A stretch of DNA of 64,000 nt from Mobula hypostoma. Its lineage: Eukaryota. The DNA lies in assembly GCF_963921235.1 (NCBI RefSeq), contig NC_086101.1:21018001-21082000 (forward strand), given 5' to 3'. The notes below the pieces were generated by a model, which saw only the letters and a program-made list of their open reading frames with translations, made no database searches and was not told the origin of the DNA. Within the stretch, counting starts at the first letter, position 1, and every line of letters begins with the position of its first letter. The translations under genes were made by a program, and so were the position numbers. Shown here piece after piece: positions 10,155 through 43,309 of this stretch.

Positions 10155-11039
10155 TACTACATGGCAACATAATCTCGGGTTTATTTTCTACACATTTCGA
10201 TCATTAATCGGTTTCACATTTTATTCCAAGCGTGCTCGCAACGGCGTGAGAGGCAGGTACTTTGCCTAAGACAGGTACTGAGGTTCTGTACGGAAAGTCG
10301 CCCCAGTCCTCGATCTGCAATGGGAAACTTGGCTGACACAGTGAAGAAACTCACTCCAAAAGATGATTGGGTGGCTGAAAGGAACTGGGCAAGGAACGGC
10401 TGCGACAAGTTTATCAAGATCTGAAATTCAATGCACGGACAAAGCCAAAGCAACAGAATCACTCGTTGCAGTCCCCTACTTCGGTCTCAGTGTTTAACCC
10501 CTCCACCTTCCCCCACCAGTTTAAGATGTAAAGCCGAGAACCCACCTCCCGAATCGCTCAGCAGCAGGTAAATAATCGTGAGGCCGGAGACGATCCCAGA
10601 ACCTATCTTTGCCATTTGCTCTGTGAAGAAGAAGATTGTCATTAAATGTTGCAATGCTGCGCGAGCTTTGGTTATATCTTTCGGGCGGGCGAGCACAGGA
10701 AGGGGCGGGGAGGTTGAAAACAGTTTGAAAGGGAGATGCGAGAGTGAAGAGGAAACGTTCAGTCCATCGCGGACGATGTCAGCTCTTAGCTGAGAGAACT
10801 CATCGGTCCTCGCCACTCCACCTGTACCCCTACAACCTATTTTTCCTCTACTTTCCATCGACTTCCTTTCATCCATATAATTCAGGCAGACAGCACCCGA
10901 ACGGAGGAACAGAATCCACGCTGATCTTTATCTGCCCATTTTCACCAATGCGACATGAGCCCATTTTTAATTCCCTTCGTATACCCATCAACTGCCTCAC
11001 ACCCTACCACTCATCAACACGCTCTGTTTAGCTTCTCAC

Positions 11040-21108: not shown

Positions 21109-21237
21109 TCATGTTGTTGCTGCCAACAATGTGTTCACATCAGGATTGTATTTTATCTCATCGTATATCGTTGTGAGCTGTGCCCTTGGATTTTGATGTC
21201 CTTCGTTGGCATCCAGTTGATGTAAATGTCTCTGTGG
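21109..21237 (-). CDS. Duplicated ITSM-bearing terminal exon (distal copy): alternative last exon or remnant of a paralog
   Basis: Acceptor ttacctgctttcaag intact. Translates PQRHLHQLDANEGHQNPRAQLTTIYDEIKYNPDVNTLLAATT*. There are 3 substitutions in the first 108 nt versus 25239-25394; a 1-nt loss after the ITSM gives an earlier stop. Confidence 0.6.
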   Translation of the reverse strand, partial: PQRHLHQLDANEGHQNPRAQLTTIYDEIKYNPDVNTLLAATT

Positions 21238-23163: not shown

Positions 23164-25960
23164 TGAAATGTCTCTGTATAACACTGATCTCTACATATCC
23201 CTCTGTCACAGTATGCTGGTCTGAGAAAGATCAATTATCTTTCGTCACTCTATTTTCTATGCATTATTCAGTTGCCAGCCACATCAATATATTACCCTCA
23301 TTTGCAGGTATTCACACATTGCAAATTCAAGCAATTTTTCTGCCATTAATGTTAAGCAAACGTGTCAGTAGATCTCTGCTTCATCTCTTCCTACTTTTCT
23401 AAAAAGTGGTTTGCAGTCATTAAGATTCCACTCTGCAGAACAACTCCAGAGTCAACAGAAAAATGGAAGACAGTAAGACAACATTTTTTGACTCAGCCAC
23501 AGCCTGTTTTAAAACTGTGGTGTAGATTCTCAGAATTTTTCACCAGCTTCTCCACTCCTGTTTTTACCAACACTTAATTTCCTTTCCCACAAGGGAAATT
23601 CTCTCATATTTCTGACAGCTGATGGTTACTGCCATTTCCCTGTTTACATTTAAATTCTCCACTCTGCCTGTGCAAAAAAAACCCTGCCTGCTCTATTTTC
23701 CCTTTAGGCGAGAGTAGGAATCAGAAGAAACCTCAGTATGGGCCTCAGTATTTAAAGCTAAAATTAATGATGTGGTTGTCAAACATTTCCGTAGTGCTAC
23801 ACTGTTTTTATCCAATGCTACGTGACAAATTTATTTTGGAGGGTTTTACATTTGCAAGTTTCTTGTTAATGTTAAATCATACCAAACCTGAAATTTAACA
23901 GGGCCTTCCTTTCATGATTTTCCTTTCTAAACCCAATGTGATGTTTGAAGCACTTGACAAGAATCTTAGACGGTTCTTTGAGAACCACCTTCACTGAACC
24001 TGAAACCAGTGACTTACCAGCAAAGCTTTTGATCTCAATCCTGATTAAGAGTCTTGTTCCCGAGCTTTGACAATCTCTTTGCCTCCCTCTCCCCCACTCC
24101 ACCCTTACAATCGGATGCTCCTTGAACTGCTGAGTTCCTGCAACAACTTTTCTTTTGCTGGTAGTAGTTCCACTGCTTTTTCACCATTCCAGTGCATTAC
24201 TCCTTCAAGGCACGCTGGAAATTCTATGTCAGTGTTGTCACTGGGCCCTTTCTAAGCCACACCACCGAGCATCTTTGTTTAAAGCCACACCAATTCCAAA
24301 TGCTTTGTTAACAAAATGAGAATACATTTGTGTTGGAATAGAGCAAACATATCACCATCATACAGAGAAATGCATCAATAAAAAAAAAGTTAATTAAATA
24401 AAATACGAAATGTCATGGCCGAATGATAACCATAACAAATAGGAAATGGTGGAAATACACTGTGGTTGACAGCTCATGCACAGCACTTCTACCTGAGTAT
24501 ACACATGTAAAGGCAGTGGTTTCCTTCAAAATCCTCAAGCTCCTCTGCCAAAGATCATGTCTGATCAGGCTTTGGCTTAGCTCAAGTTTCCTGTGTAACC
24601 CTTGACTAACTGTAGACTGAAAATCTGGATTTTGCAGCCTTGCAATACACAATGATTCAGCCTCCAGAAAGTCCAAATGTTTACATCCCCTGAAAAGAAA
24701 CTCCACTTCATTGCCACCTTAAACTGTGATATTTCCTCAAGCTAGATTCACCATAAGGAGAAACATTATCTCAGCATCGATCTTGTCAAATTTATGCAGA
24801 ATCTTAATCATCAGTACAGACATGGGTTTACTATATAACCTCCGATCAGGTTAGATTTAACCTACCCAACCTTTCCTTATAAGGTAACACTTTGATCCCA
24901 TGAATGAACCTAGTGAGTCTTCCCTGATCTTCCTTCAATGAAAGCTATCAATCCATCACACTTCTTCCTAACTCATCTGTGAGGTATAAACCATGCCTCC
25001 ACCTTAGAACTCATCACCTTGCTGTGTATTTCCAACATTTCTTACTTAGATTTGTCCAGCTTCTCCCAGTCTTTCCAAATTGGATTCTCCTTGCAAGCCT
25101 ATTCCAACGCCTGGTCTGTTCTCCCAGTGTGCTAGCCAGTTGTGTCAGCTGTAGGCAGTGCCGAAAGTTGCTGAGCATAAAAATTGCTGGGATTAAAGCA
25201 CACTTCAATGCCATTTTTATGTTTCATGTGGTGGATGATCAATGTTCAGTGCTGAACTTCTCTTCCATGTTCGTTCCAGCCAAAGATGTGTTCAAATCAG
25301 GATTGTATTTTATCTCATCGTATATCGTTGTGAGCTGTGCCCTTGGATTTTGATGTCCTACATTGGCATCCAGTTGATGTAAATGTCTCTGTGGCTTGAA
25401 AAAAAAGTAATTTTAATGATCCATTCATTTAGACTGTGTGATTATCTGAGTCATTTTTGAAACATAATGAGGAAGTTTGTTTAAAGGGAATGGAATACAA
25501 AATATTTTCCAGACCTGGAGACAGAATTTAGCACTGGAAAATCAAGGAATTAAAAAAAAATCTGTATAATTTCTGAAGTATAAGGTGAAACAGAGGAGTT
25601 ATGTGTTATAAAGTAATGTCAAAAGTCTTTTCAATAGCTGGAGACCGCTATACTGTGGGATATGCAGAGAAATGGCTGCATATTTCTGCTTTTCTTTATG
25701 ATAATCTGACCCTCTAACTTTGCCGTGGGAGTACTTTATAGTAATGTGGAGGTTTCGACCATGGAGGAAGCTTCATGCTATAAGACATGGACAGGGAGAG
25801 CTATTTTGTCCAGCTACGGAGGGACATTAACTATGTTTTGTGGAATATTGCAGGATCTGCTAAAATGTATAGAGTTTCCTCCCGGGGTTTTGTGCTGAAC
25901 TTGTGGAGAAGATTTTTAAAATGTCATTATACAAGGAACTCTGTACTGTCAGTGTGATCT
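23164..25960 (+). repeat. Tandem duplication, copy B (ITSM exon plus 3' flank)
   Basis: Collinear with 16330-21810 and separated from it by a CR1 fragment. Confidence 0.85.
25239..25394 (-). CDS. CD2/SLAM-family receptor, terminal cytoplasmic exon with ITSM (proximal copy)
   Basis: Acceptor ttacttttttttcaag, phase 0. Translates PQRHLHQLDANVGHQNPRAQLTTIYDEIKYNPDLNTSLAGTNMEEKFSTEH*. TIYDEI (25311-25328) matches the ITSM consensus TxYxxI/V. Confidence 0.8.
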   Translation of the reverse strand, partial: PQRHLHQLDANVGHQNPRAQLTTIYDEIKYNPDLNTSLAGTNMEEKFSTEH

Positions 25961-27084
25961 GGATAAAGCTTTGATTTCCCTTATTGGTCAGCAGCACAGC
26001 ATTTGACTTTGGAAAATTGCTAACAGCAATTTTGTAAAAATACAAAACTGACCCATATGCAAATATAACCGTGAAGGTTATCAGCTTACCAGGATTGTTT
26101 AAAATATGATGTGGTTGGTACGTCTAGCACACTGCTGTCTCTCTACTGTTTCTTGTTCCAATCCTATCTGTTATCTGATTATTCATCTGTGTTTTTATTC
26201 AGACCCATGGTGTGGGACCTCAAAGTTGGGTTAGTACTGCAGTATCTGCAGTCAGCACTCAAGCCACATTGAACTGCATAATCTCTGTATCATCTCACTG
26301 ATGGGGCAAATCTTATTGGCAATTTTTTAAAATTACTTTTGTTTCCCCATTGACTGAACTTCTGCTGTCTGCCTCCAGTTTTTGTTAACTACATATTGCC
26401 AATTTTAGATCATTAACACAGTGAAGTCCTGATGATTTTTTACAACATTAAAGGCAATGCATAAATGCAATTTCTGTATTTTTTTCAAACTCTGTTTGTA
26501 ATAACTTTATCCTACACAGTCTTGGTGGAAAACTTCCACTTTCATAAGTTAGTCACGCTGAAATGGTTAGAAGAGATTGAAAGGGGTTCTGTTGGATTCA
26601 TGGAATCATGGAAGCAGCAGAAACAAAAATGCAACAAAGCAACAGAATGGGAGAAAAATTTGGAGGAGAAATGCCCAGGGATGAAAGAAGAGAAGCCAGA
26701 AGGAATTGTTCAAGAGGTACCTTGTGGCAAGCAGCAAATGCAAAATGAGGGACTGAGAGAAAACACAAAAGAACAAAGATTACTGAAACCTCAATAAATT
26801 GGAAGTCACAGAGAAATGCATATGAAATGCAGAGGTATCAACCTTGTTCTTGAAGTCCCATCTAAAATTACCTTAGAGCTATGATGAAATCTCCCATGAG
26901 GGGACTGTTCATGTGGTAGGGATGTAATAACCCTTAAATTACCTCATCTCTCAAAAATGTTCCTCATCCAATCCCACTGTGCTCAATGACTGTTTTTTGG
27001 TTCATGTCGTAATTTTCTTTTTATTCCTTTTTCCAGAACAAGGTATCTTTAAGAAACCTAGTGTTTGAAATTGTGATCGTAAGC

Positions 27085-27540
27085 ATAGACATGAGAAATT
27101 CAGCAGATGCTGGAAACCTAGGGAAAACCACACAAAATGTAGGAGGAACTCAGCAGGCCAGGCAAAATCTATGGAGATGAGCAAACAGCTGACATTTCCG
27201 GCCAAGATCCTTTTTCAGGGCTGGAGAGGAAAGTGTATGGCGGTAGAATCAAAAGGTGGGAGAGGGATGGAGAATAGCCAGAATGTGATAGGTGAAGCCA
27301 GGGGTTGTAGGAAAGGCAAAAGTCTGGAAGGGAAGGAATTGGGTGGAGGAAAGTGGGCCATAGGAAGAAAGTGAAGAAGGAGGGGACCTGGGGGAAATGA
27401 CTGGCAGCTGAGAAGTTATAAGAGGCCAGAGTGGGGGAATGGAAGTAGACAGGAGTGTGAGGGAAATTTTCTCTTTAGTAGAAGGAGAAAACAATACTCA
27501 TGCCATCAGGTGGAGGCTACCCAGATGGAATATAAAATGT
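27085..27540 (-). mobile_element. Penelope-like element 3' fragment, degenerate
   Basis: cagcagatgctggaaac...ggaggaactcagcaggccaggc terminus and gccatcaggtggaggctacccagatgg (GIY-YIG end). Confidence 0.65.
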
Positions 27541-28378
27541 TATTACACACTGGAGGTCACGAATAAAGTGGCCACTGAGCTTATACCTGTTTATTTACCT
27601 CTGGTGAATTTAAACCCTGGTAAACCTTCACCAAATCTCAGTGAAAGCACTGAAAAGCACTCTACCACTTTCTCAAGGGCATTCAAGGGGAGGTCATAAA
27701 TGCTGGCCTCGCCAGTACACACCACATCTCACAATTAAAGAACAAGGAAAGAACAAGGCTTTGCAACAAGTGTGTGCAGTTACTTCCACATGGCTGAGGT
27801 ATCTCTCAACAGAATAAATAACGGATGAAGCTGCCCTACCCAGTTCTGCAATGCTTGCTGTCAGTCATAGGTGATAGAGTTCAGCAGTGGCGTTGATGAA
27901 GTGGAAGGAATCGTATCTATTTTTAGACTTGCGAAATCAGTGAGGGCGTGTTCCTATAAAAATAAGGTTGGAAGAAAATTGAAAATTTTGATGGCTGTTT
28001 GAGGCTTGCCTACTGAAAGGGGAGGAGGCAGCAGTCCTCATCACATCTGATGTGCTGTATTCTACAATAGTGCAGACAAAGCTGGAGAGGAGTTGGTATT
28101 GTTTGGATGGTGCAGATACAGTGGACTGAATAAGATGTGCTGTAACATTCTGTGACATAATCAAATTACAATTCCATTGTGCAAATCATGAAGCCTTTAT
28201 CAAACGGAACCTCCTCACACCATCAGACAGAGACAACATTCATGCACAGAAGGAGGGAAACTGATCAGGGTATGAATAACTTTGCTCTTCTTGAAAGTAT
28301 TGATGAATATTTGGCACTGCAGAAAGGGGAGAGAATGGGAAAAGTGTAAACCCAACAAATGTTGCAGCTTCTACTGAC

Positions 28379-28452
28379 CTGGTCCATGGCAATGTTTGTT
28401 CTCCTGGTCACAGCATACAGCACCGATTTACTTCTCCTTTCAGTATCAGAAG
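28379..28452 (-). CDS. CD2/SLAM-family receptor, cytoplasmic exon 1
   Basis: 74 nt, phase 1-0, acceptor gtgttttttttttaatttaaag and donor CAG|GTCAGT. Translates ASDTERRSKSVLYAVTRRTNIAMDQ. Its phases join the TM exon to the ITSM exon exactly. Confidence 0.72.
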
Positions 28453-29986
28453 CTTTAAATTAAAAAAAAACACAACTGCTGTTGGAACCATGTCTGGATG
28501 CTCCTTCTGTTCTATTTTCAGTAAATATTTTCTCCAGATATCCTTCCCCTTAAAGGTTACCCACCATACCTTCTCCATTCAAAAATTTGACTGACTGCAC
28601 AACCACAAGGACATCTCAGAGAAGTCTGACATTATCCTCAATGGGCACATTGTGGGCATTTCCTTTCACTGAACTACCCAGCTGCCATCCCTTTATAAAC
28701 TTCCACTAGGAATGAGGTATCCAGTTATTTCTTGCTGGTATCAAACTATACAGTAGACTTTAAACCAGGGAAAATCACAAATTCGCCCTCAGATGAAAAA
28801 AAAAACATGGTGGAGTTCTGTTCTTCATTGTAAAATGAAGTGGGAGTACTCTTCACAGCCAGTGTAGTTTCAGAAAATGCCTGTGCCATCGAGGTGAATT
28901 GATATTTACATTATGATGTTGGTCACCCAAAGGATTTGTCGATTATCACCAATCCAATTTCCACAATACAAATAACACTCTGTGATAATGGATATAAAAA
29001 CTATGCATTCAGAAAGACCTTAAGAAGGCAAATGTGAATATCTGTGCCCAAAGTAGAGGAGTATCTCATGCTGCATTGTAGCAAAGAAAGGCCACATGTT
29101 TGTGTGTACAGCAGCAACAAAGGTGGAGATTAGAATGGTTTTGATCAGTTCAAAAGACAAATTTTCTTCATGTCACCAGTACTGTGAAATGCCGGAGGAC
29201 AGAAGAAACATGAGGATTTGCACCGTTCTGTCTAAAATGCCATGAGGGAGCAGAACATAGCTTGGACCAGTTTATCGTATGAGAAATATCCCCAATGCTT
29301 AGATGTTCCTGCTTTCCTTTAACCTTTCTTTCAGACACAGTCAAGTTTGGTGAACTACAGAATTACAGATTGTGCAGGGATAGGCAAGATGGAGTGGGAG
29401 CAGAAAATCAAGCAGGTTATTCCCAACATCTTTGCTTTACTCACAGACTGGAATTTCACTTTTGCAATATAAACTGTTCTTTCCATTCTGGCTTTCTCTT
29501 TGGTTAATTAATCTCCATTGAAAAAATCTGAGAATGGTTTCTTTCTGTCTTCACAGCACATTCTAAGATAATGATTGAATTCTATGCTGACTTTGATACT
29601 TCAACCTCCTCTGTGGATGTACAGCATCCAAAAAATATTTGCAGTTAGTAATGAAACCTATGCAGCTCAGTTAAGAGGTGACATCATCTGTGATCTAGTT
29701 TAATTGGAAAGCATTCTATGAAAATCACATAAACCTCTAAGAACAGAAGGCATTACATGGCCCTTCAGAGCAACAGATATTGCTTTACTGCAATGCATTG
29801 CTGTTAGGTAGGAGTTACCTTGTATCCTTTCAGCTCAGTTTTGCTCTTCTGATCTGAGCTCCCAGTTGTGGTTCAAACTTTGGACTTGCACATTCTTAGA
29901 TCCCATATGAGGTACACTGTTAGTTGCTGAACAGCAGGGAAATCCACACCCAGGTATTGAAGAATATGCAAGACAAGACCATTCCA

Positions 29987-30090
29987 TTATGTCCTGCACT
30001 GCAAAGAGGAAACTGGGGTCCATTGTGTTGGTGGTGGAGAGGGTTTTGAGTGTTGTAGCTGGGGGTGAGGTTGTCTGGTCAGCTTGGTAC
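29987..30090 (-). CDS. Candidate alternative terminal exon (Pro-rich, Tyr-free tail)
   Basis: Acceptor cattcacctgattgcag, phase 1 and compatible with the TM exon. Translates GTKLTRQPHPQLQHSKPSPPPTQWTPVSSLQCRT*. An ATTAAA lies on the minus strand at 29699-29704. No transcript evidence. Confidence 0.35.
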
Positions 30091-30449
30091 CTGCAATCAG
30101 GTGAATGCAGAGAGCTTGTCCAGTGTAGCAGATTGGACGCATGTGCAATGCAAGGCCTGATGAAGGGCTTGAATACAAATACCTGCAATGGGACCCACTG
30201 AGTTGGAAGTTATGCAGGAAAGTCCCATTTAAGTGGTTCAGAAGAAGAACAGAACTCCTGCCAAGGAGCTGGTATGATTTCCTCCACTAATGATTGCCAG
30301 GTGGTAATCACTAGTTTAATGAGACCATACCTGATAGGATTTAATGCCAGAGATCCCATTCACAAAGACTAACTTGAGCCCAAATATTGTGATGGGGCAT
30401 TACCAAGGGCTGCACATTGTGACAATAAGAATATTCCAAGAGTACTTGC

Positions 30450-30566
30450 CTTTATTGAACTTGAGTTCTCTCTTCCAACACAAAGCAAAAACAATTGCAG
30501 TGATGAAAGCTTTCAGAGCAATGGTAGTAATTAAACGAATGTGGAGTGGCCTCAGTAGCTTCTCAC
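30450..30566 (-). CDS. CD2/SLAM-family receptor, transmembrane exon with intramembrane Lys
   Basis: 117 nt, phase 1-1, acceptor ccatccctttccag and non-canonical donor AAG|GCAAGT. Translates GEKLLRPLHIRLITTIALKAFITAIVFALCWKRELKFNK: a 20-residue hydrophobic segment followed by a KR stop-transfer. In frame with the C2 exon. Confidence 0.85.
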
Positions 30567-32204
30567 CTGGAAAGGGATGGACAGTCATCTGTGATTCTCT
30601 CAACATATTAATTAAACTTTGCTTAAAATAAGAAATACAGCAGACTGGTGAAGCTGATATTAAGAGAAGAGCTGATGCAGATTTACAAGGTGATAACTGC
30701 TTTAAGCATGGTATAGGGAAGGACGCTGTCCCCATGAGCAGATAGTTCAAGGATCAGAGGTTACCAGGGGCAAAAGGTGAAACTGCTGAGGGGGCAGATG
30801 AGATTGATCAAGAGTGACTGTTTCTACATCTCGTTGTCTGTATGAATGGTGACTGAAACTAGAATTAATCAGAGGTTTCAAGGGATAAACAGAAATATCC
30901 TAGCATTAAAAAAGTTGTCCATCCTGAGGAAGGAGAGTGGAGAATGGACTGACCTGGTTGTCCGACCAGAATCACTGAGCAAAATGGCTGCCTTCTGCAC
31001 AGTAAAGTTTTGTCATTGCAGAGAAGATGAAAACATATAAAAAGAACAAACACCAAGTCTCAGCATTCTATATCTTGGCCCTGTCCTCAGAAGGAGCCTG
31101 TAAGAATGAGATTTATCTAGCCAATTCCTTCTTCATTCTATTGATAAATTCAAAATAATTTTTAAACATTATTCATCAATGAAATTCTTCCTGAAAGAAA
31201 GAAAATTGTACTGTTCAAGAACATATGGGTGGTGGCATATAAATTGATTCCGACCAAGGATTAGACCAAATGACAAAGGAGCTGAATGAGGCCATTTGGT
31301 CCATTGCATCTGTGCTGCCACTTATCATAGCTTATTTTCACCTCTCAACTCAGTGCTCCTTCATTCTCATGTAACCTTTGACGTCCTTACTAATTGTGGA
31401 TCTATCAACCTTTGCTTTAAATATACTCAGTGGCTTGGCGTTCATTGCCATCTGTGGCAATGAATTTCACAAATTCACCACCCTCCTTCGGCATTCAAAT
31501 GATCTCTATCGCTGCTTTTATTTTTGACAGTTTTTCTAACTTACCCTTATTTGCCGAGTTCATGGGGTAGCGCGATACCAAAGTGGTTAGTGTAATGCTA
31601 TTACAGAGCAGCAACCTGGGTTTATACCCAAATGCTGTCTGTCAGGAGTTTATATGTTCCCAGACAGCCGTAGTGGTTATCCTCCAGGTGCCCTGGATTC
31701 CTCCCATATTCCAAGGATGTATGGGTGAGTGGTGTGATTGTCCATCTGGCTGTAATGTGAAGTACAAACTCATTTGGACCGGAATGCTGCATCTACAAAT
31801 AGACCTAAACCTTAAATTTGTTCGTAATTAACCTCATATAATTTTTTTCTGCCAAGTTAAAGGCAATCAAAACTAAATTGCTGAATCTAGAAGTTTAAGC
31901 ATCAGAAAGTGTCAGGAGGTTAATTATAAATACTTTGTTTCAACCACGGAACCAGCCCAGAGAAAAATAAAGTGTCTAATTTGAAAGCAGATAGCCACCA
32001 AAGAACAGTTTTAGATAAGCTGCTGACACAAGCCCAGGGAAATTACTTTCTCTTCTGGAAAACCCTTTGAGTCTATTTTCACTAACACAAAATCATTCCA
32101 TACAAAAACATGCTCCCTTCTATTGCTTGTGCCTTGCCCCTTGCATCTATGACTTGTAGCCATGGAAACATCTGCTGATGGAAAAAAGTCAAGGTTTATA
32201 AAAT

Positions 32205-33810
32205 CAAGCAACACACATCAAAGTTGCTGGTGAACGCAGCAGGCCAGGCAGCATCTCTAGGAAGAGGTACAGTCAACGTTTCGGGCCGAGAGCCTTCATC
32301 AGGACTAACTGAAAGAAGAGCGAGTAAGAGATTTGAAAGTGGGAGGGGGAGGGGGAGATCTAAAATGATAGTGGAAGACAGGAGGGGGAGGGATGGAGCC
32401 AAGAGCTGGGCAGTTGATTGGCAAAAGGGATATGAGAGGATCATGGGACAGGAGGCCCAGAGAGAAAGAAAAGGGGGAGGCGGGGAAAGACCCAGAAGAT
32501 GGGCAAGGGGTATAGTCAGAGGGACACAGGGAGAAAAAGGAGAGAGAGAAAGAATGTGTGTATATAAATAAATAATGGATGGGGTACGAGGGAGAGGTGG
32601 GACATTAGCAGAAGTTTGAGAAGTCAATGTTTATGCCATCAGGTTGGAGGCTACCCAGATGGAATATAAGGTGTTGTTCCTCCAACCTGAGTGTGGCTTC
32701 ATCTTGACAGTAGAGGAGGCCATGGATAGACATATCAGAATGGGAATGGGATGTGGAATTAAAATGTGTGGCCACTGGGAGATCCTGCTTTCTCTGGCGG
32801 ACAGAGCGTAGGTGTTCAGCAAAATGAAGTCCCAGTCTGCGTCGGGTCTCGCCAATATATAGAAAGCCACATCGGGAGCACCGGACGCAGTATATCACCC
32901 CAGCCGACTCACAGGTGAAGTGTCGCCTCACCTGGAAGGACTGTCTGGGGCCCTGAATGGTGGTGAGGGAGGAAATGTAAGGGCATGTGTAGCACTTGTT
33001 CCGCTTACAAGGATAAGTGCCAGGAGGGAGATTGGTGGGGAGGGATGGGGAGGACAAATGGACAAGGGAATCGTGCAGGGAGCGATCCCTGCGGAAAGCA
33101 GAGAGAGAGAGGGGGAGGGAAAAATGTGCTTAGTGGTGGGATCCCATTGGAGGTGGCGGAAGTTACTGAGAATAATATGTTGGACCCGGAGGCTGATGGG
33201 GTGGTAGGTGAGGACAAGGGGAACCCTATTCCTGGTGAGGTGGCAGGAGGATGGAGTGAGAGCAGATGTACGTGAAATGGGGGAGATGCGTTTGAGAGCA
33301 GAGTTGATGGTGGAGGAAGGGAAGCCCCTTTCTTTAAAAAAGGAGGACATCTCCCTCATTCTGGAATGAAAAGCCTCATCCTGAGAGCAGATGTGGCGGA
33401 GACAGAGGAATTGCGAGAAGGGGATGGCATTTTTGCAAGAGGCTGGGTGAGAAGAGGAATAGTCCAGATAGCTGTGAGAGTCAGTAGGCTTATAGTAGAC
33501 ATCAATAGATAAGCTGTCTCCGGAGATAGAGACAGAAAGATCTAGAAAGGGGAGGGAGGTGTCGGAAATGGACCAGGTAAACTTGAGGGCAGGGCGAAAG
33601 TTGGAGGTAAAGTTAATGAAGTCAATGAGCTCAGCATGCGTGCAGGAAGCAGCACCAATGCAGTCGTCGATGAAGAGAAGGAAAATTGGGGTCAGATACC
33701 AGAGTAGATTTGAAACATAGGTTGTTCCACAAAGCCAACAAAAAGGCAGGCATACCTCGGACCCAAACGGGTGCCCATAGCTACACCTTTAGTTGGAGGA
33801 AGTGGGAAGT
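32205..33810 (-). mobile_element. Penelope-like element, 5'-truncated, in the C2-TM intron (sense to the host gene)
   Basis: GIY-YIG ORF 32605-33057 (CKRNKCYTC...FLYIGETRRRL...EEQHLIF) and frameshifted RT C-terminus. 10-bp TSD tttataaaat at 32195-32204 and 33811-33820. Confidence 0.92.
32271..32306 (-). ncRNA. Minimal hammerhead ribozyme motif in Penelope terminus
   Basis: AGUC-CUGAUGA-aggcucucggccc-GAAACGUU-GACU: stem I AGUC/GACU, core CUGAnGA and GAAA, and a palindromic ACGU in the minimal stem III. Confidence 0.55.
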
Positions 33811-34549
33811 TTTATAAAATGATAAGAGTGGGTAGCCAGCACCTTTTTCCAGATGATAATAGTGGACAGCCATTTGGAAGTGGCTAATATAAGAATGCAT
33901 AATTTTATTGTGATTGGATGATGCTATAGAGAGGATAGCTGAGATACATTGTCTTACACAGAAATTGGTGTCCGCTGCCCACGGTGATGGTGCAGGTACA
34001 TACATTAGAGACACAGATGAGACTCTTAGATAGACACATGGATGAGAGAAAAATGGAGGGCAATGTGGGAGGGAAGAAGGGCCTATACTATGTTAAGGCT
34101 TGCCGCATATTGGTCACTCCCTAACCTTGTGAAACAAAATATTTAGTCTTCTCATCACCAGCGTCCTTTGAGATTCCTTATTGTCTCAATTGTACCTCAG
34201 AGAATTTGTGACAGTCTGTTTAATAAGACTGCAATTGTACAGTCAGGTGGAGTAGAGATGAGCTCAAATGTTAATCTCAGGTTTAGAGTGGTATCAGTGG
34301 TGTTGAACATGAGTGATTCCCACCCATTGCAGTCAAGCTCTGACTGATCCATAGATGGGATCAGAATGAATAGGGAACCAAAGTCAAGTCTGGAGGGTTA
34401 TACTCAGATTCCATGTTCCTAAAATGTCACTGATCTATCTCAGACCTTACCCTGTCCATTGTAAGACTTTTGAGATTAGAAGAGAAATGAAATAAATCAC
34501 TATCATTTTTAGGAAAAGTTTACAGGGTTTAAAAATGTAATGTACCAAC

Positions 34550-34840
34550 CTTCAGTGACCAGACAGAGCCTTCTGAGATCCACACTCGTAGCTGCCTCAC
34601 TGACAGGGTTCCTCACTGTGCAGTTGTACACTGCGTTGTTCTCACTCAGCCTTACGGACAATTCCAGTCTTCTCCCTCCGTCAGTCAGTACATGTGACTC
34701 ATCGGCCGTGACCTCATCACCTCCTGTCCACCAAGTGAAAACTGGCTTCGTGCCATGCTCCAGTGAACAGCGCAAACTAATTTTACATACCTCATCTGAG
34801 TTGAACTTGCTGCTCTTTATTACTGGTGTTGATACAGATT
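34550..34840 (-). CDS. CD2/SLAM-family receptor, IgC2-domain exon
   Basis: 291 nt, phase 1-1, acceptor ttttcttataaacag and donor AAG|GTTGGT. Translates ESVSTPVIKSSKFNSDEVCKISLRCSLEHGTKPVFTWW...YNCTVRNPVSEAATSVDLRRLCLVTE. Four Cys and the YxCTVxNPVS motif are characteristic of CD2/SLAM domain 2. Confidence 0.93.
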
Positions 34841-35790
34841 CTGTTTATAAGAAAAACACAAATAAAGATAATGGTTATCAACAAGTAAGTATTAGCCATG
34901 AGCCCCTCACAAGAACTTTGGAAACAGGACAAGGAGAAATCTCCTCTGCCATTCATCAATGCCATTTTTACACTATCCTAATTCCTTTAATATACAAAAC
35001 ATCTATCTACTTTAGTATTAATACACCTTAATAATTAGGGTTCCCCAGTCTTCCAGAGCAGACCTACCCGTTATGCTGATTCTAGCCTTCTAAGACTGGG
35101 CAGATGTCTCCCAAGCATCCACTGTCTTAAGACCTTGAAGATCTAGTTCTTAAGTTTCAGTGAGTTTACCTCTCATTTTTTTAAACTCTAAGCAATACAG
35201 GTGTACTCCACTCTGTCTTTTGTATGGGATTTCCCTCTATCCCAGGAACCGTACTGCTGACATTTAGTTAGAACTCCCATGTTATGTCACGTTTTAGATA
35301 AGGAGACACAAATGGATCTTGTATCAACAGCTTTGTGAGTACTAGGAACATTCCTTCCCCATGCTATCTATGTTCCATCTAGATTCTCTGAAATGAAGCT
35401 CAGTAGAACAGCACCTTTGTCTCCTGTCCTTCACTTTCACTTCTGTTCTGCACTGTACAATTCTCCTTCCAAATAGTAAGGAGGAGATATAAATGCTGCT
35501 GACATACCCACTCACCATTGAACAATGTGGCTTTTAGGACAAAAGGATGAGTACACAGGTGGCAGCAAGAATTCACATTAAGAGATCATTCTAAGTCATA
35601 CAGTAAACAGACAGTGCTTCGGACCGGGTCCTTCACAAAAGCAGGTGCTGCATCTGAGCAGTGTTTCAGTGTTCCCTCTGCCTTGTGTATCCCACAGACT
35701 TCAGCTCAGACCATAAACATCTCCCCTTTCATCTTTAATTACTCTAAAAATGTCAGACCAGAATATATATTATAATTAAAATAATATTAC

Positions 35791-36120
35791 CATAAATTCG
35801 CAGTTCCGTCACTTCATGATGGAGATCTGTATTGGTCCTTGCAATTATTTCATACAGACCTTCATCACTGTCTGTTAGGTTCTGTATTTCCAGGCTACAG
35901 TCCTTCCGGTTTAATGTCATCCTCTCTCTGTTACAAGTTATTGGGCTGTTTTTATATTTCACACATAATTGAACCATTTTTTGATTAGATGAATATATGT
36001 AGTCCCAAGTAATGAATGAAATGCTTTCTCCTGGCACATTTCCTGGCAAAGTGACTGACTGTCCCAGTGTCCCATTCACCACACGACGAGCAGTTGGATT
36101 CCCATCGGTCTCTGCCAGAA
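35791..36120 (-). CDS. CD2/SLAM-family receptor, IgV-domain exon
   Basis: 330 nt, phase 1-1, acceptor ttcttctgtttcag and donor G|GTAATA. Translates (V)LAETDGNPTARRVVNGTLGQSVTLPGN...ITWDY...SLEIQNLTDSDEGLYEIIARTN...LRIY. It has the G-x-S-V-T-L-P, C-strand Trp, SLxIxNL and D-x-G-x-Y V-set marks but lacks the canonical B/F cysteines, as is typical of CD2/SLAM domain 1. Confidence 0.92.
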
Positions 36121-37045: not shown

Positions 37046-37894
37046 GGTTGAGATGCCAGAACAGGCCAGGAGTGGAAATAAAATTATATCACTATTTTAA
37101 CAAGTTAGGAATTGTGAAGAGTTTGAAGGTATTGGCAATCATCTTCTATGTTACAATGAAAATGAAGATTTGTAGGTTGCAATCATTGAAAGGATTGTAT
37201 GAAGGCAGTCTATCTACACTATCTACACTATTTACTTTATCTAACACTAGGTGTCGGCACTGATTTTGTTCATTTTCAGTTTACCAAAAGAACACAGCAG
37301 ATTACACAGTCTCCATTGAAATCTGTTAAGAAATAATACATGTTTCTATAGTAATGTAGTCGTGTTGATATTGTTTTAATTTGCTCTGTTTTTTCATTGT
37401 TGTTCTTCTCTCATGCTTTGTGCAGCATTTGTTTTTGCCATTTCCACAGCATTTGACTGTTGTTTATGAGGCCAAGTTGCTGGCTAAACACTCTTCACAG
37501 CATAGATGGAAAGCTCGCAAGGAGCATGCTGGATTCGAACTAGGGACCATTTGCCGCAAAGTCTGACGCTGATGCCTCTACAACACTAGGCGGTTTATTT
37601 TTCATTGAAGTGCATAATTTATTACTCAGTTAAATGTCAGTTTGTCTTTTTTATTCCTTTTTTTACTCTTTCCATGAGTGGGTGTGTACCATTTGAGTAA
37701 GTTCAGCTTCCCACAATTCAACCATCCTACCCCCGCAACTCTGCTATTGATTGATGCCCAGAGGTTGTGTAGCTAACCCAAATTCTGATAAGAATGCCCA
37801 CATTTGCTCTGCAAATCCTTGACAGAGGATGAAAGGAGAATGGAAGGCAAACTGACAAAGGGTCAAATAAACAAAAATAACATAATGACATTAG

Positions 37895-38305
37895 AGCAAG
37901 TTGAGACGCAAACAACAGGAATTCTGCAGATGCTGGAAATTCCAGCAACACACATAAAAGTTGCTGGTGAACGCAGCAGGCCAGGCAGCATCTCCAGGAA
38001 GAGCTGCAGTCGACGTTTCAGACCGAGACCCTTCGTCAGGACTAACTGAAGGAAGAGTGAATAAGGGATTTGAAAGTTGGAGGGGGAGGGGGAGATCCAA
38101 AATGATAAGAGAAGACAGGAGGGGGAGGGATGGAGCCAAGAGCTGGACAAGTGATAGGCAAACGGGGATACGAGAGGATCATGGGACAGGAGGTCCAGGG
38201 AGAAAGACAAGATGGGGGGGACCCAGAGGATGGGCAAGGGGTATATTCAGAGGGACAGAGGGAGAAAAAGGAGAGTGAGAGAAAGAATGTGTGTATAAAA
38301 ATCTG
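37895..38305 (-). mobile_element. Penelope-like element 3' terminal fragment
   Basis: Closely matches 17045-17400 and 32205-32580. Absent from the paralogous block near 7990. Confidence 0.85.
38008..38043 (-). ncRNA. Minimal hammerhead ribozyme motif in Penelope terminus
   Basis: AGUC-CUGACGA-agggucucggucu-GAAACGUC-GACU: complete core with a GUC cleavage triplet; stem II relies on wobble pairs. Confidence 0.6.
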
Positions 38306-38309
38306 TCAA

Positions 38310-39780
38310 GAATAGAGGTGCATACTGGAGGATGTTAAATGTTATTCCTCTGTTTACGAAAAGCAATTGTGATAATCATGGGAATTATAGACCAGTGAGT
38401 CTTATGTTAGTGGTGGATGAACTATTGGAGACAGAATTTATTCAAATTTAGCGAAGATAGATTGATTACAATTAGTCTGCATGACTTTATAAAGAGCAGG
38501 CAGTGTCTCACAAGGTTGATGGAATTCTTCAAGGAAGTGACAAAACATTGTGATGAATGAACAGCAGTAGATGTGGTGTACATGGATTTCAGTGAGAAGT
38601 TTGATAATCCTCATCCACAAAGTCAGAAGACATGGAATCCAGGGGACCTTGGCTGTGTGGAGTCAGTATTGGCTTGCCCACAGAAGGCAGACGGTGGTAG
38701 TAGATAGAGCAGAGCCTACCTACAATTCAATGACCAGTACTATTCCATCGTGATCTCTTCTGGGAAACTACCTATTGTGAATTTTATAAATGACTTGGAT
38801 GAGGGAATGATAAGGTGGTTAGTACGTTTGCAGATGACCCAAAGTTTAGTGGTGTTGTGCATAGCGTAAAAGGTTGTCATAGGTTGAAATTGGACATTGG
38901 TATGATGCAGAGAATTGGGCTGAGAAGAGTTCTAAATGGAACAAAGATAGGATGCAGAAAATTGGGCTGAGAAATGACAGATAGAGTTCAGTCTCGGTAA
39001 GTGTGAAGTGAAACACTTTGGAAGGTCGAACTGGAAGGCAAAGTACAAAGTTAATGGCAGGATCCTTTTAGTGAGGAGGAACAAAGAGACCTTGGGGTCC
39101 ATGTCGATATATCCCTCAAAGATTCTGCATAAGTCGATAGTGTGTTTAAAATGGCATATGGTATGTTGATTTTCATGAGTCAGGGAACTGAGTTAAAGAG
39201 CCATTAGGTAACTCAGTCTGCTTAGACCACACTTGGAATATTGTCTTCTCTTCAGGTCTCCTTATAGGAAGGTTATGGGAATGTGCAGATGAGACTGCCT
39301 GGAGTAGAGGGCATTTTTATGAGGAAAGGTTTAGTAAGCTAGTGCTTTTCTCTTTGAAGTGAAGAAGAGTGAGAGATGACTTGATAGGAGGAGTGTATGA
39401 TGACAAGACACACTGATAAAGTAGTCGGGCAGAGCACTTTTCATGGGACGGAAATGGCTAATATTAGATGGCATAATTTTAACATGATTGGAAGAAAGTA
39501 TGGGGAGGGTAGAAGTAGGGTTAATCTATTGTCAGAGGTTGATCTTTTGCACAGAGAGTGGTGGATGACTGGAATGGGCTGCCAGGGGTAGTGGTAAAGG
39601 CAGATTCATTACAGATATTTAAAAGAGTCTTAGATAGATACATAAATGAATGAAATATGGAGGGCTATGCTGGAGGGAAGCATTATATTGATGCTGGAGT
39701 ATGAAAGTTCAGCATGACGTAGTGGGCTGAAAGGCCTGTACTGTGCAGTGCTGTTCTATGTTTCTGATATGATGGGAGTA
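38310..39780 (+). mobile_element. CR1 LINE fragments, degenerate
   Basis: Paralog of 8000-9270. Confidence 0.7.
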
Positions 39781-40189
39781 TGGAAAATGCTGTTGCTGAG
39801 CTGATAATCTCCTAATCGTTTATTTAACACTAACTTCAATGTTCGCCATTACATTTTATGAAAATGAATTATTTTGAAATGAAGTACATTCTAATCACAC
39901 AGTTTGCAATGTCGTTCTGGACAGGTATTTCCATAATTTCCAGACCAAATATAAACCTGGTAATTTATGCTCCTACATCGTAACACAACCTCGGATTTAT
40001 TTTCTACACCTTTTGATCATTAATTGATTTCACACTTTATTCCGAGCAACACTGTGTGCTCGCGACAGCGTGAGAGGCAGATATTTTGTCTGAGTCAGGC
40101 ACTGAGTGTCTGTACAGAAACACTCCCCTGTCCCCCCACGCCCCGATCTGCAGCAGCAAACGTGCATAAAAGAACAAACAATATCACCT

Positions 40190-41295
40190 CCACAATATCA
40201 CACACAAAATGCTGGAGGAACTCAGTAAATCAGGGAGCATCTACGGAACAGAGTGCAGTTTCGGGCTAAGACCCTTCTTCAGGACCGGAGGGAAAAAAAA
40301 TTTAAAGGGTGGGGGAAAAGGGAGGGAGAAACACAAGGTGATAAGTGAAACCGGGCTGAGGGAGGGGGTTTGAAATAAAGAACTAGGAAATTGATTAATG
40401 AAAGAGATACAGGGCTGGAGAAGGGGGGATGTAATAGGAGAGGCCATGGAAGAAAGAAAAACAGTGAGTAGCACCAGAGGGAGATGATTGTCTGGCAAGG
40501 AGATGAGAGAGAAAAAAGGGGATGGGGAATGGTGAAGGCGGAGGGTGGGCATTACCAGAAGTTCGATAAACTGATGTCCATGCCATCAGGTTGGAGGCTA
40601 CCCAGACGGAATACAAGGTGTTGTTCCTCCAACCTGAGTGTGGCCTCATTGCAACAGTAGAGGAGGTCATGGATTGACTTAATGGAATGGGAAGTGGAAT
40701 TAAAATGGATGGCTACTGGGAGATCTCACTTCTTCTGGCGGACAGAGCTTAGGTACTCAGTGAAACGGCCTCCCAATCTACATCGGGTCTCACCGATATA
40801 CAGGAGGCCACACTTGGAGCACTGGACACGGTATATGACCCCCAACAGATGCACAGGTGAAACGTCGCCTCACCTGGAAGGACTGATTGGGGCCCTGAAT
40901 GTTAGTGAGGGAGGAGGCGTAGAGCCAGGTGTAGCACTCGTTCCGCTTGCAAGGATGAGAGCCAGGAGGAGATCAGCGGGGAGGGCTGAATGGACAAGGG
41001 AGTCGCATAGGGAGCCATCCCTGCGGAAAGTAGAAAGTGAGGGGGGGGGTGCAGGAGGGTAAAATATGCTTGCTGCTGGGATCCCTTTGGAGATGGCAGA
41101 AGTTACAGAGAATTATGTGCTTGATGCCAAGTTGGTGGTAGGCGAGGACAAGAGGAAACCTATCCCTGGTAAGGCGGCGGGACGATGGGGTGAGGGCATA
41201 CGTGCATGATGTGGAAGACATGCGGCTGAAGGCAGGGTTGATGGTCAAGGATGGGAAGTTCCTTTCTTTGAAAAAGGAGAACATGTCCTTCATTG
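40190..41295 (-). mobile_element. Penelope-like element (diverged subfamily), 5'-truncated
   Basis: MKDMFSFFKERNFPS...DRFPLVLAY (RT C-terminus) and a GIY-YIG remnant (LYIGET, EEQHLVFRLGSLQPDG). Confidence 0.85.
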
Positions 41296-41344
41296 CTCCA
41301 TAAGATACTGGCTGGATTAAAAGAACTGGGCTGAAAATTATTGC

Positions 41345-41760
41345 GACACCGTTGGCCTTTTCTCCTTGGAGCGACGGAGGATGAGAGGTGACCTAATAGT
41401 GGTGTATAAGGTGATGAGAGGCATTGATCCTGTGGATAATCAGAGGCTTTTTCCCAGGGCTGAAATGGCTAACACGAGAGGGCACAGTTTTAGGTTGCTT
41501 GGAAGTAGGTACAGAGGAGATGTCAGCGGTAAGTTTGTTTTTACGCAGAGTGGTGAGGGCGCGGAATGTGCTGCCGGCGACGCTGGTGGAGGCGGATACA
41601 ATAGGGCCTTTTAAGAGATTCCTGGACAGGTACACTGAGCTTTAAAAAACAGAGGGCTATGGGTAACCCTAGGTAATTTCTAAAGTAAGTACATGTTCAG
41701 CAGAGCACTGTGGGCCCAAGGGCCTGTATTGCGTTGTAGGTTTTCTACGTCTCTATGACA
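41345..41760 (+). mobile_element. CR1 LINE 3' end
   Basis: LERRRMRGDLIVVYKVMRGID...RGHSF coding remnant plus the CR1 3' UTR. Confidence 0.85.
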
Positions 41761-43309
41761 AGGTTATCGAGATTAGAAATTCAAAACATGGGCAAAGCCA
41801 GAACAACGAAGCAACAAACCGTACCTCGGTTTCAATGTTTAACCCTTCCACCACCTTCCCCCACCAGTTTAAGCGAGAACCAACCTCCCGAATCGCTCAA
41901 CAGCAGGTAAATAATCGTGACGCCGGAGAGGCTCCCAGAAGCTGTCCTGGCCATGTCTTCTGTGAAGCGAAGATGGTCATCTAAATGTGGTAGTCTTCAC
42001 GCAAATGTGGTACCGTTACGCTCGATTTGCTCATATCGCTCAGGGGCATGGGCACAGAAAGGGGCGGGGAAAGTGAAAACAGTTTGAAAGGGAGATGCGA
42101 GAGTGAAGTGCGAACGTTCAGTTGTTAATCGGGCTCGATGTCAGCTGTTAGCTGAGCGGTCCCATCCGTATTCGCCCCTTGCACCCGTACTCCTACGACT
42201 TAATTTTCCTCAACTTTCCGTCCACTTTTTATCCATTTCATTCAGACAGACAGCGCCCGAACAGACAATAGAATCCACGCCGATCTTTATCTGCCCATTT
42301 TCACCAATGCTACATGAGCCCATTTTTAATTCTCCTCGTATCCCCACCAACTGCTTCACACTCTGCCACTATCAAAACGCTCCAATTAGCTTCTTACGAC
42401 TAATGAAACTGCCGTCTCTAGGAGGTGGTAGGAAATCGGGGCATCCGGGGAAACCTACACGATCACCGGCACAACGTCCAGACTCCATGCACACAGAACC
42501 GGAGGTCGGATCGAACCCGGGTTCCCGGAGCTGTGAGACAGTAGTTCCGCCACCCTCAGAAGCTGCGGACAGGTTACGACTGGCTACAGCACCTTTAGTT
42601 AAGGGACGGAACACAGCTACTGTATATTCAGCAAATAGGGACAAAATGAGGAACAAGCTAGGTATAAAACAGCAGCAGAGTGGGTGGATGGGGGTTCGAT
42701 TGCAATATCTAAGAGAAGACTGGATGAGTACATGGATGGGAGGGGTACTGAGATCTATGGTCCATTTGAGGATCGATGGGACTAGGCAGAATAACTGCTC
42801 ATCGCAGACTAGATGGATCGAACGGCCTGTTTCCATGCTGTCGTTCTGTATGTGACAAAACGCTGACTCTATGAGAAACCGCTTAACAGCTCAGGCAATA
42901 GCTCTGGAGGCAAATGTACTATCGACGTTTCGTGTCTGTGTCCAGACCTTTCATCTGTCCATTTCCCACCATATCTGCTGCTTTACACGTTGAATTCCTC
43001 AAGCGTTTTGTCTGCTTCTACAGATTCCATTATCTGCAGTCTCTTATCTCAAAATACCGACTCCAGACACCCACGAATATATTCAGAAAATGTAAGGGTC
43101 TGATATAAGACGAGCAACGGCAGAGGATCTGACAGTAACAGGAAAATAATATGGTGAGTGTAATTTCTGCATGCAATCATGGAACAGATTTGCAAGCCTG
43201 GGCCTCGGAACTGGCTCCTAAACCTAATGCATGCTTCCTTCTTTTGCTTGACGAGAGACTCACTAGCTCACCACCCATATACCCCTGTATTTACCAGTCT
43301 TGCTGCTCA

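Follow-up and report, generated by a model that had tools for sequence, protein, structure and literature searches.

Mammalian SLAM receptors (SLAMF1, 3, 4, 5, 6 and 7, and especially SLAMF6/NTB-A) combine an IgV domain without its disulfide and a two-disulfide IgC2 domain, are encoded by leader, V, C2, transmembrane (TM) and tail exons joined in phase 1, and carry the TxYxx[V/I] switch motif (ITSM) in their tails. The same domain pair, exon layout and motif are found in a receptor gene of the devil ray Mobula hypostoma, although the sequence identity between its product and SLAMF6 is only ~25%. The mammalian members have an uncharged TM and usually at least two ITSMs, whereas the Mobula protein has a lysine in the middle of its TM, one canonical ITSM and one degraded proximal motif.

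Basic TM residues are known from other members of the family. The CD2/SLAM receptors of Xenopus with NxxR TMs reportedly go back to Guselnikov et al. in 2011. As far as these published, charged-TM receptors are described where they are cited (PMC4536121, PMC6557307), they resemble the Mobula protein in joining a CD2/SLAM ectodomain to a basic TM residue, which indicates that the family is able to adopt adaptor-type TMs outside mammals; by the same accounts their arginine is conserved and exon-shuffled (NxxR, FcR-gamma type), whereas the Mobula lysine would have arisen by point substitution in the ancestral TM. Charged-TM SLAM-like proteins are also present in cartilaginous fish, namely Callorhinchus XP_007908710 (P0027, elephant shark) and Scyliorhinus XP_038673370 (P0104, catshark). 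Both share with the Mobula protein a SLAM-like V domain and a basic TM residue, and the tail of P0027 bears a tyrosine motif (SVYENV), a further likeness to the motif-bearing Mobula tail; unlike in Mobula, the residue is an arginine in a different type of TM (L-x-I-R-A), the TIYDEI ITSM is absent, and the tail of P0104 has only 12 residues against 85. Neither is a near relative of the Mobula gene, as placed by the tree in the case of P0104.

In other Ig families (LRC, NCR), activating KIR (KIR2DS/3DS), KIR2DL4, NKp44 and chicken CHIR-AB likewise set a basic TM residue on a tyrosine-motif background; the TM lysine of NKp44 is paired with DAP12 (PMC13107469), and CHIR-AB is called bifunctional in one account (PMC3601082). 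Their tail motif is an ITIM, whereas that of the Mobula protein is a SAP-type ITSM, and their association with adaptors has been shown experimentally, whereas that of the Mobula receptor is a prediction. A first-pass annotation of the locus had presented the union of TM lysine and ITSM as new. The union itself stands, in a single annotated polypeptide, and a basic TM residue and a tyrosine tail motif occur together in the RefSeq models of two Mobula species; the novelty is weaker than was claimed, as the gene is in RefSeq and charged-TM CD2/SLAM receptors were already known.

A six-exon SLAM-family gene in Mobula hypostoma

Positions are those of the window, the whole stretch of 64,000 nucleotides that was analysed, and all features lie on its minus strand. 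The gene is intact, with a leader exon and five others whose splice sites were read. The leader (signal peptide) exon (41885-41954) starts with the ATG at 41954, ends in a phase-1 GT donor and was placed by tblastn with residues 1-23 of XP_062905756.1, to which it is 100% identical; the earlier model had been drawn without it. The IgV exon (35791-36120; phase 1-1, AG acceptor, GT donor) encodes a V-set domain, and the IgC2 exon (34550-34840; phase 1-1) a domain with four cysteines. The TM exon (30450-30566; phase 1-1) encodes the segment LITTIALKAFITAIVFALCW, within which the lysine codon (K249) at 30511-30513 reads AAA. The tail is completed by exon D (28379-28452; phase 1-0), which holds the proximal motif SVLYAVT, and by the terminal exon E (25239-25394), in which TIYDEI is read at 25328-25311 and which ends in a TGA stop. 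Encoded are a signal peptide, a disulfide-less IgV, a two-disulfide IgC2, a TM helix that contains Lys249, and a tail of 85 residues in which a single ITSM is canonical. The five exons that the first-pass annotation had joined in frame are all present in the phases it gave, together with its lysine codon and its tail motif.

The spliced product of these five exons is identical to residues 25-345 of XP_062905756.1 (P0082) at 321 of 321 positions, a Mobula hypostoma protein entered in NCBI RefSeq as "T-lymphocyte surface antigen Ly-9-like"; the gene had therefore been annotated already, and the same junctions are used by an independent gene model. Donors follow the GT consensus in 4/5 cases and are GC in 1/5, and acceptors are AG in 5/5. 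The GC donor, AAG|GCAAGT, belongs to the TM exon and had gone unmentioned in the earlier description. Read-through at this site would enter the segment 30400-30449 and produce a hypothetical 25-residue, motif-less tail with its stop at 30402-30400; the homologous site is read through in the database model of the paralogue P0001. A duplicate terminal ITSM exon, E' (21109-21237), has the same acceptor as exon E and a stop of its own, and the M. birostris gene model terminates with an E'-type exon.

By sequence and predicted fold, the gene is a CD2/SLAM-family receptor, as had been proposed from its IgV-IgC2-TM-tail layout. The IgV exon scores as V-set in Pfam (E 3e-9) and finds its best PDB sequence match in SLAMF6/NTB-A (E 5.7e-7); NTB-A also tops the Foldseek ranking of the AlphaFold model (target TM-score 0.81), in which ranks 1-8 are taken by NTB-A, CD2, CD48 and CD58, and CEACAM1 ranks lower. 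The canonical B-F disulfide is missing from the IgV, which has no cysteine at the B-strand (SVTLPG) or F-strand (GLYEII) positions, and the IgC2 cysteines C152, C158, C207 and C226 are invariant in an alignment of 12 proteins. A profile search with this alignment gave matches limited to cartilaginous fishes. Judging by the known members of the family, the ectodomain would bind a CD2/SLAM-family ligand, possibly itself.

CEACAM membership was also considered, because CEA heads the PDB search with the whole-protein sequence, by which CEA and CEACAM1 score similarly to CD2/SLAM members; it was rejected on the four-cysteine C2 domain, the match of the IgV to SLAMF6 and the fold ranking.

Origin of the transmembrane lysine

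K249 is the eighth of 20 hydrophobic TM residues, a central position such as the lysine occupies in DAP12-type receptors; the segment is strongly hydrophobic despite the lysine (Kyte-Doolittle 2.26), and the region is modelled by AlphaFold as a helix (residues 230-264). Among the full-length cartilaginous-fish relatives aligned, the lysine is common only to the M. hypostoma protein and its M. birostris sister; the two nearest relatives, P0001 and P0080, have isoleucine at this site, and the TM of all the others is uncharged, so that what the first-pass annotation gave as the SLAM norm normally holds for these fishes too. In the tree, the two lysine-bearing proteins are sisters (100/99) and adjoin P0001 and P0080. 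The lysine is therefore a change of the Mobula lineage. On the aligned sequences it traces to one branch, later than the divergence from the P0001/P0080 lineage and before the Mobula common ancestor, and the replacement of isoleucine by lysine is compatible with one nucleotide step, ATA to AAA.

The stretch LTTIYDEI is invariant in all 12 aligned proteins, from chimaera to rays, and TIYDEI is the sole canonical TxYxx[V/I] copy in the tail. Of the two features whose joint conservation the first-pass annotation had proposed to check, the ITSM is thus kept throughout and the lysine is confined to the two Mobula proteins. The Y+3 residue in the proximal, ITIM-like motif is isoleucine in 10 of the 12 proteins and threonine only in the two with lysine, so that the gain of the TM lysine coincides with an Ile-to-Thr change in the tail. 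From family knowledge, the phosphorylated ITSM would recruit SAP/EAT-2-type SH2 adaptors or phosphatases; a literature search for SH2D1A in elasmobranchs gave nothing.

Adaptor coupling and competing readings

The reading that we prefer, at a probability of about 0.4, is that its central lysine enables the receptor to associate, within the membrane, with a DAP12-type dimer whose TM is acidic. Adaptor docking of K249, one half of the dual-mode receptor (adaptor plus ITSM switch) that the first-pass annotation had proposed, is plausible by analogy: every DAP12 partner known so far carries a lysine at the centre of its TM, assembly with DAP12 needs no more than a basic residue in the middle of a poly-Leu/Val TM (PMC13107469), and the TMs of activating and inhibitory KIR differ essentially by one lysine (PMC6557307). 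The receptor may be on its way to the adaptor-coupled activating type, as an ITSM receptor that has only begun the conversion proposed for activating KIR derived from inhibitory KIR, and if the GC donor is used leakily, the gene could also produce an isoform with a short tail and a purely activating role. Counting against adaptor coupling are the annotated 85-residue tail with its ITSM, unlike the short, motif-less tail of classical DAP12 partners; one survey in which no FcR gamma was found in sharks (PMC4016189); and an RNA depth of zero across the exons for IgV and IgC2. It is doubtful that the receptor already stands midway, with a one-nucleotide lysine, a decayed proximal motif and a weak GC donor that yields long and short isoforms; if it did, one gene would encode a paired receptor in the manta/devil-ray lineage.

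It is also quite conceivable, at clearly less than even odds, that this is an ordinary SLAM receptor signalling only via TIYDEI, in which the lysine is tolerated, silent or mildly deleterious, and recruits no adaptor. The single-branch change compatible with ATA to AAA fits such a history, as do an ITSM and an entire reading frame that both Mobula species retain and the branch lengths of the two lysine-bearing proteins (0.07 and 0.08), which do not exceed those of an uncharged paralogue pair. Conservation of the lysine between the congeners is little informative, because their TM exons differ at only 2 of 39 residues, a closeness at which a neutral lysine would persist too. A silent lysine is harder to reconcile with its place at residue 8 of a 20-residue TM, from which snorkelling to the interface would be difficult, and with the established retention of other single-pass receptors that have an unpaired TM lysine (PMC13107469). 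The invariant isoleucine of the proximal motif was, moreover, lost in the same lineage, which suggests a signalling shift and not drift at one site.

We consider it unlikely that the gene is a redundant, poorly expressed or decaying paralogue within a tandem SLAM cluster, its lysine, degraded motif and GC donor reflecting relaxed constraint. RNA runs labelled as this species gave depth 0 over the exons for IgV and IgC2, none of their contigs covered the IgV, the IgC2 or the lysine codon, and no reads or contigs from this gene were found in the runs examined; the exon-rich stretch matched no run when used as query, and the runs first retrieved covered only intronic LINE repeats (32200-34180). 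The tail exons of a paralogue, in contrast, were covered at depth 33-240 by contigs placed at 90% likeness. Relaxed constraint would also agree with three derived weakening changes (the lysine, the Y+3 threonine and the GC donor) and with an IgV only 79% identical between the two Mobula proteins. The runs are, however, small, of uncertain type and from unstated tissue, and decay is at odds with a frame open through six exons in two species, with splice sites of which only one donor departs from GT, and then to the recognised GC alternative, and with two intact ITSM exon copies, E and E', that are 95% identical between flanks only 72-88% identical.

Contigs over exons D and E were considered as transcripts of the lysine-bearing gene and rejected. 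Differences at 25242-25244 change the final codon from His to Ser (...TES, as in P0087/P0083), and the contig at the TM exon spans only its first 39 bases, a stretch common to paralogues; their source is therefore a paralogue, and all that they support is the conserved D|E junction, present at the homologous position in spliced form (joint 25394|28379).

The first-pass annotation had named a different, uncharged TM exon as grounds for abandoning its model; family-based tblastn and a hydrophobic-segment scan revealed none of the family type between 21000 and 41954. Given this result, the ...N[KE]|A... junction identical in the 12 full-length proteins aligned, the match of AAG|GCAAGT to the strong consensus required by GC donors and the homologous D-to-E junction of the paralogue contigs, it is most improbable that the model is an annotation artefact, with a true transcript that contains another TM exon or in which the lysine-bearing TM is never spliced to the ITSM exons, even though the GC donor is non-canonical and relatives are often represented in the databases by models that omit exon D or continue past that donor into frame-shifted tails.

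On current understanding, activating immune receptors have evolved repeatedly from receptors of the inhibitory or switch kind, which first acquired a basic residue in the TM and then lost their tails; to our knowledge, intermediates in this conversion are seldom seen. If the lysine is silent, the gene merely adds to the annotated SLAM paralogues one that has an unusual residue. If the lysine docks an adaptor, the Mobula receptor would represent an intermediate of this kind from the SLAM family of a cartilaginous fish, and would provide a simple test of how readily ITSM and ITAM signalling combine.

Gene structure and transcript evidence

Scripted splicing of the minus strand joined an IgV exon (36120-35791, phase 1-1), an IgC2 exon (34840-34550, phase 1-1), a transmembrane (TM) exon (30566-30450, phase 1-1), exon D (28452-28379, phase 1-0) and exon E (25394-25239, phase 0 to a terminal TGA), exactly the five exons and phases proposed in the first-pass annotation; the TM lysine and tail motif it had reported are both present in the spliced product, as the AAA codon at 30513-30511 (minus strand; K249) and the ITSM TIYDEI at 25328-25311 (minus strand). 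A leader exon absent from that model was located by tblastn at 41954-41885 (minus strand); it supplies the ATG, codes for a hydrophobic signal peptide and has a GT donor in phase 1. Every acceptor is AG, and every donor but one is GT; the exception follows the TM exon, where GC stands in the strong context AAG|GCAAGT, a point on which the annotation was silent. The spliced product was identical at 321/321 positions to residues 25-345 of P0082 (XP_062905756.1, 345 aa, "T-lymphocyte surface antigen Ly-9-like", Mobula hypostoma), and the leader exon matched residues 1-23 at 100% (tblastn); the window is therefore M. hypostoma DNA, and the gene is already in RefSeq with identical junctions. That its model is an artefact is very improbable.

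Read-through of the GC donor at 30400-30450 (minus strand) yields a 25-residue tail without motifs. In the model of the paralogue P0001, translation likewise continues across the homologous site (…NKGKYS…), and for that reason the GC donor may be common to the small clade to which both belong. P0001 is a SLAM family member 5-like protein (V-V-C2) whose leader exon lies at 10547-10642 (minus strand; 100% to residues 1-32); since its remaining exons precede the window start, its first intron exceeds 10 kb.

The RNA-labelled runs matched by a 10-kb stretch contained nothing but intronic LINE sequence, and the IgV-IgC2 stretch was found in none of the RNA runs listed. Intronic LINE/CR1-like repeats with long ORFs (32200-34180, 26970-27530 and about 37800-41600) reached a depth of 10^4-10^5 in small runs labelled RNA. 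Contigs of a second organism (90% likeness) span exon E and some of exon D, and their joint at 25394|28379 reads GT..AG on the minus strand. Their differences turn the last codon into Ser (...TES), as in the paralogues P0087/P0083, and the contig over the TM exon ends short of the Lys codon; the contigs therefore confirm the D|E junction for the family, not transcription of the studied gene. We consider it unlikely that the studied gene is a paralogue in decay or little used.

Family and fold

An IgV-exon query against 1.8 billion representative proteins, followed by word-index searches, matched exclusively cartilaginous-fish proteins named SLAM-family-like. Pfam V-set and Ig_3/I-set domains are present in the protein, and the best solved relative of the IgV is SLAMF6 (E 5.7e-7). 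An AlphaFold model, built from an alignment of 12 full-length cartilaginous-fish proteins, had pLDDT values of 80-95 across most of both Ig domains, and its positions 230-264 formed a helix; with this model as the query, the best Foldseek match was NTB-A/SLAMF6 (target TM-score 0.81), followed by CD2, CD48 and CD58, with CEACAM1 lower. The CD2/SLAM-family assignment made from sequence reading was upheld by both IgV sequence and Foldseek. The canonical disulfide is missing from the V domain; the four Cys of the C2 domain are invariant in the alignment. CEA was the first match in a whole-protein sequence search, a result explained by its repeated C2-like domains; CEACAM membership was rejected on the four-Cys C2 domain, the IgV match to SLAMF6 and the Foldseek order.

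Tail motifs and terminal exons

In SLAM receptors, phosphorylated ITSMs bind SAP/EAT-2 or phosphatases for signalling. The LTTIYDEI sequence is invariant from chimaera to rays in the 12-protein alignment. The proximal motif in exon D (28379-28452, minus strand) conforms to x-Y-A-[V/E/D]-I in all aligned proteins except P0082 and its M. birostris counterpart P0081 (XP_072115633.1), which carry SVLYAVT; Thr at Y+3 occurs only in these two Lys-TM Mobula proteins, and Ile in the other aligned relatives.

Exon D is skipped in several RefSeq isoforms of relatives (P0003, P0006, P0089, P0097, P0102), so that their ITSM exon is translated in the wrong frame (…RDIYVNWMP…) and the ITSM is lost; this is either genuine tail-switching or recurrent model error. 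A copy of the terminal exon (25239-25394) lies at 21109-21237 on the same minus strand, within a 4.2-kb tandem repeat. The copies are 95% identical (flanks, 72-88%), both retain the acceptor, ITSM and stop, and the M. birostris model, whose gene spans 23.3 kb, terminates in the distal type; the duplication suggests either gene conversion or the alternative use of the two terminal exons. The segment at 26967-27068 (minus strand) matches the last 34 residues of P0080, the Hemitrygon model, at 68% identity; since this segment and the repeat block at 26970-27530 overlap, the P0080 model probably ends in a repeat-derived exon that was annotated in error.

Origin and possible role of the TM lysine

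Around the Lys site, the TM reads ...TTIALKAFITAIV... in both P0082 and P0081, ...TTITLIAFITAIV... in P0001 (M. hypostoma, next gene in the cluster) and ...TTIVLIVFITAVF... in P0080 (Hemitrygon akajei). P0082 and P0081 are sisters in a maximum-likelihood tree (support 100/99), with P0001 and P0080 as neighbours. Because the TM exon products of all four align residue for residue apart from the Lys site, the lysine is a derived Ile-to-Lys replacement on the Mobula branch, compatible with one inferred nucleotide change (ATA to AAA). Only P0082 and P0081 combined a TM Lys with an ITSM in a hydrophobicity scan that took in all retrieved proteins. Retention across the two Mobula species carries little weight, since their TM exons differ at just 2/39 residues, and there is a distinct possibility that the lysine is silent.

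The same scan identified two charged-TM SLAM-like proteins with Arg, Callorhinchus P0027 (XP_007908710; SVYENV tail) and Scyliorhinus P0104 (XP_038673370; 12-residue tail), whose TMs share one type, L-x-I-R-A, possibly an old activating type of cartilaginous-fish SLAM clusters.

Receptors mixing TM charge with a tyrosine motif are known from other families. No description of cartilaginous-fish SLAM receptors, or of Lys plus ITSM within the CD2/SLAM family, was found in the literature searched. Charged TMs are already published for the Xenopus CD2/SLAM family, where they are of the NxxR type (as cited in PMC4536121 and PMC6557307), whereas the studied gene has a TM Lys.

All known DAP12 partners have a central TM lysine, and a TM otherwise made of poly-Leu/Val needs only one basic residue at its centre for assembly and surface expression (2026 review, PMC13107469). 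The hydrophobic stretch around K249 is 20 residues long and bounded by Arg on its outer and KRE on its inner side; K249, 8 residues in, qualifies by position for DAP12-type pairing. In a 2014 survey, FcR gamma was not found in sharks (PMC4016189). We place the probability that K249 docks an adaptor at about 0.4. Activating KIR are thought to have descended from inhibitory KIR, their TMs differing essentially by Lys (PMC6557307). Gain of the central Lys would have created a putative adaptor-docking site in parallel to this route from inhibitory to activating receptor, and the concurrent loss of the Y+3 Ile in the proximal motif fits such a KIR-like shift.
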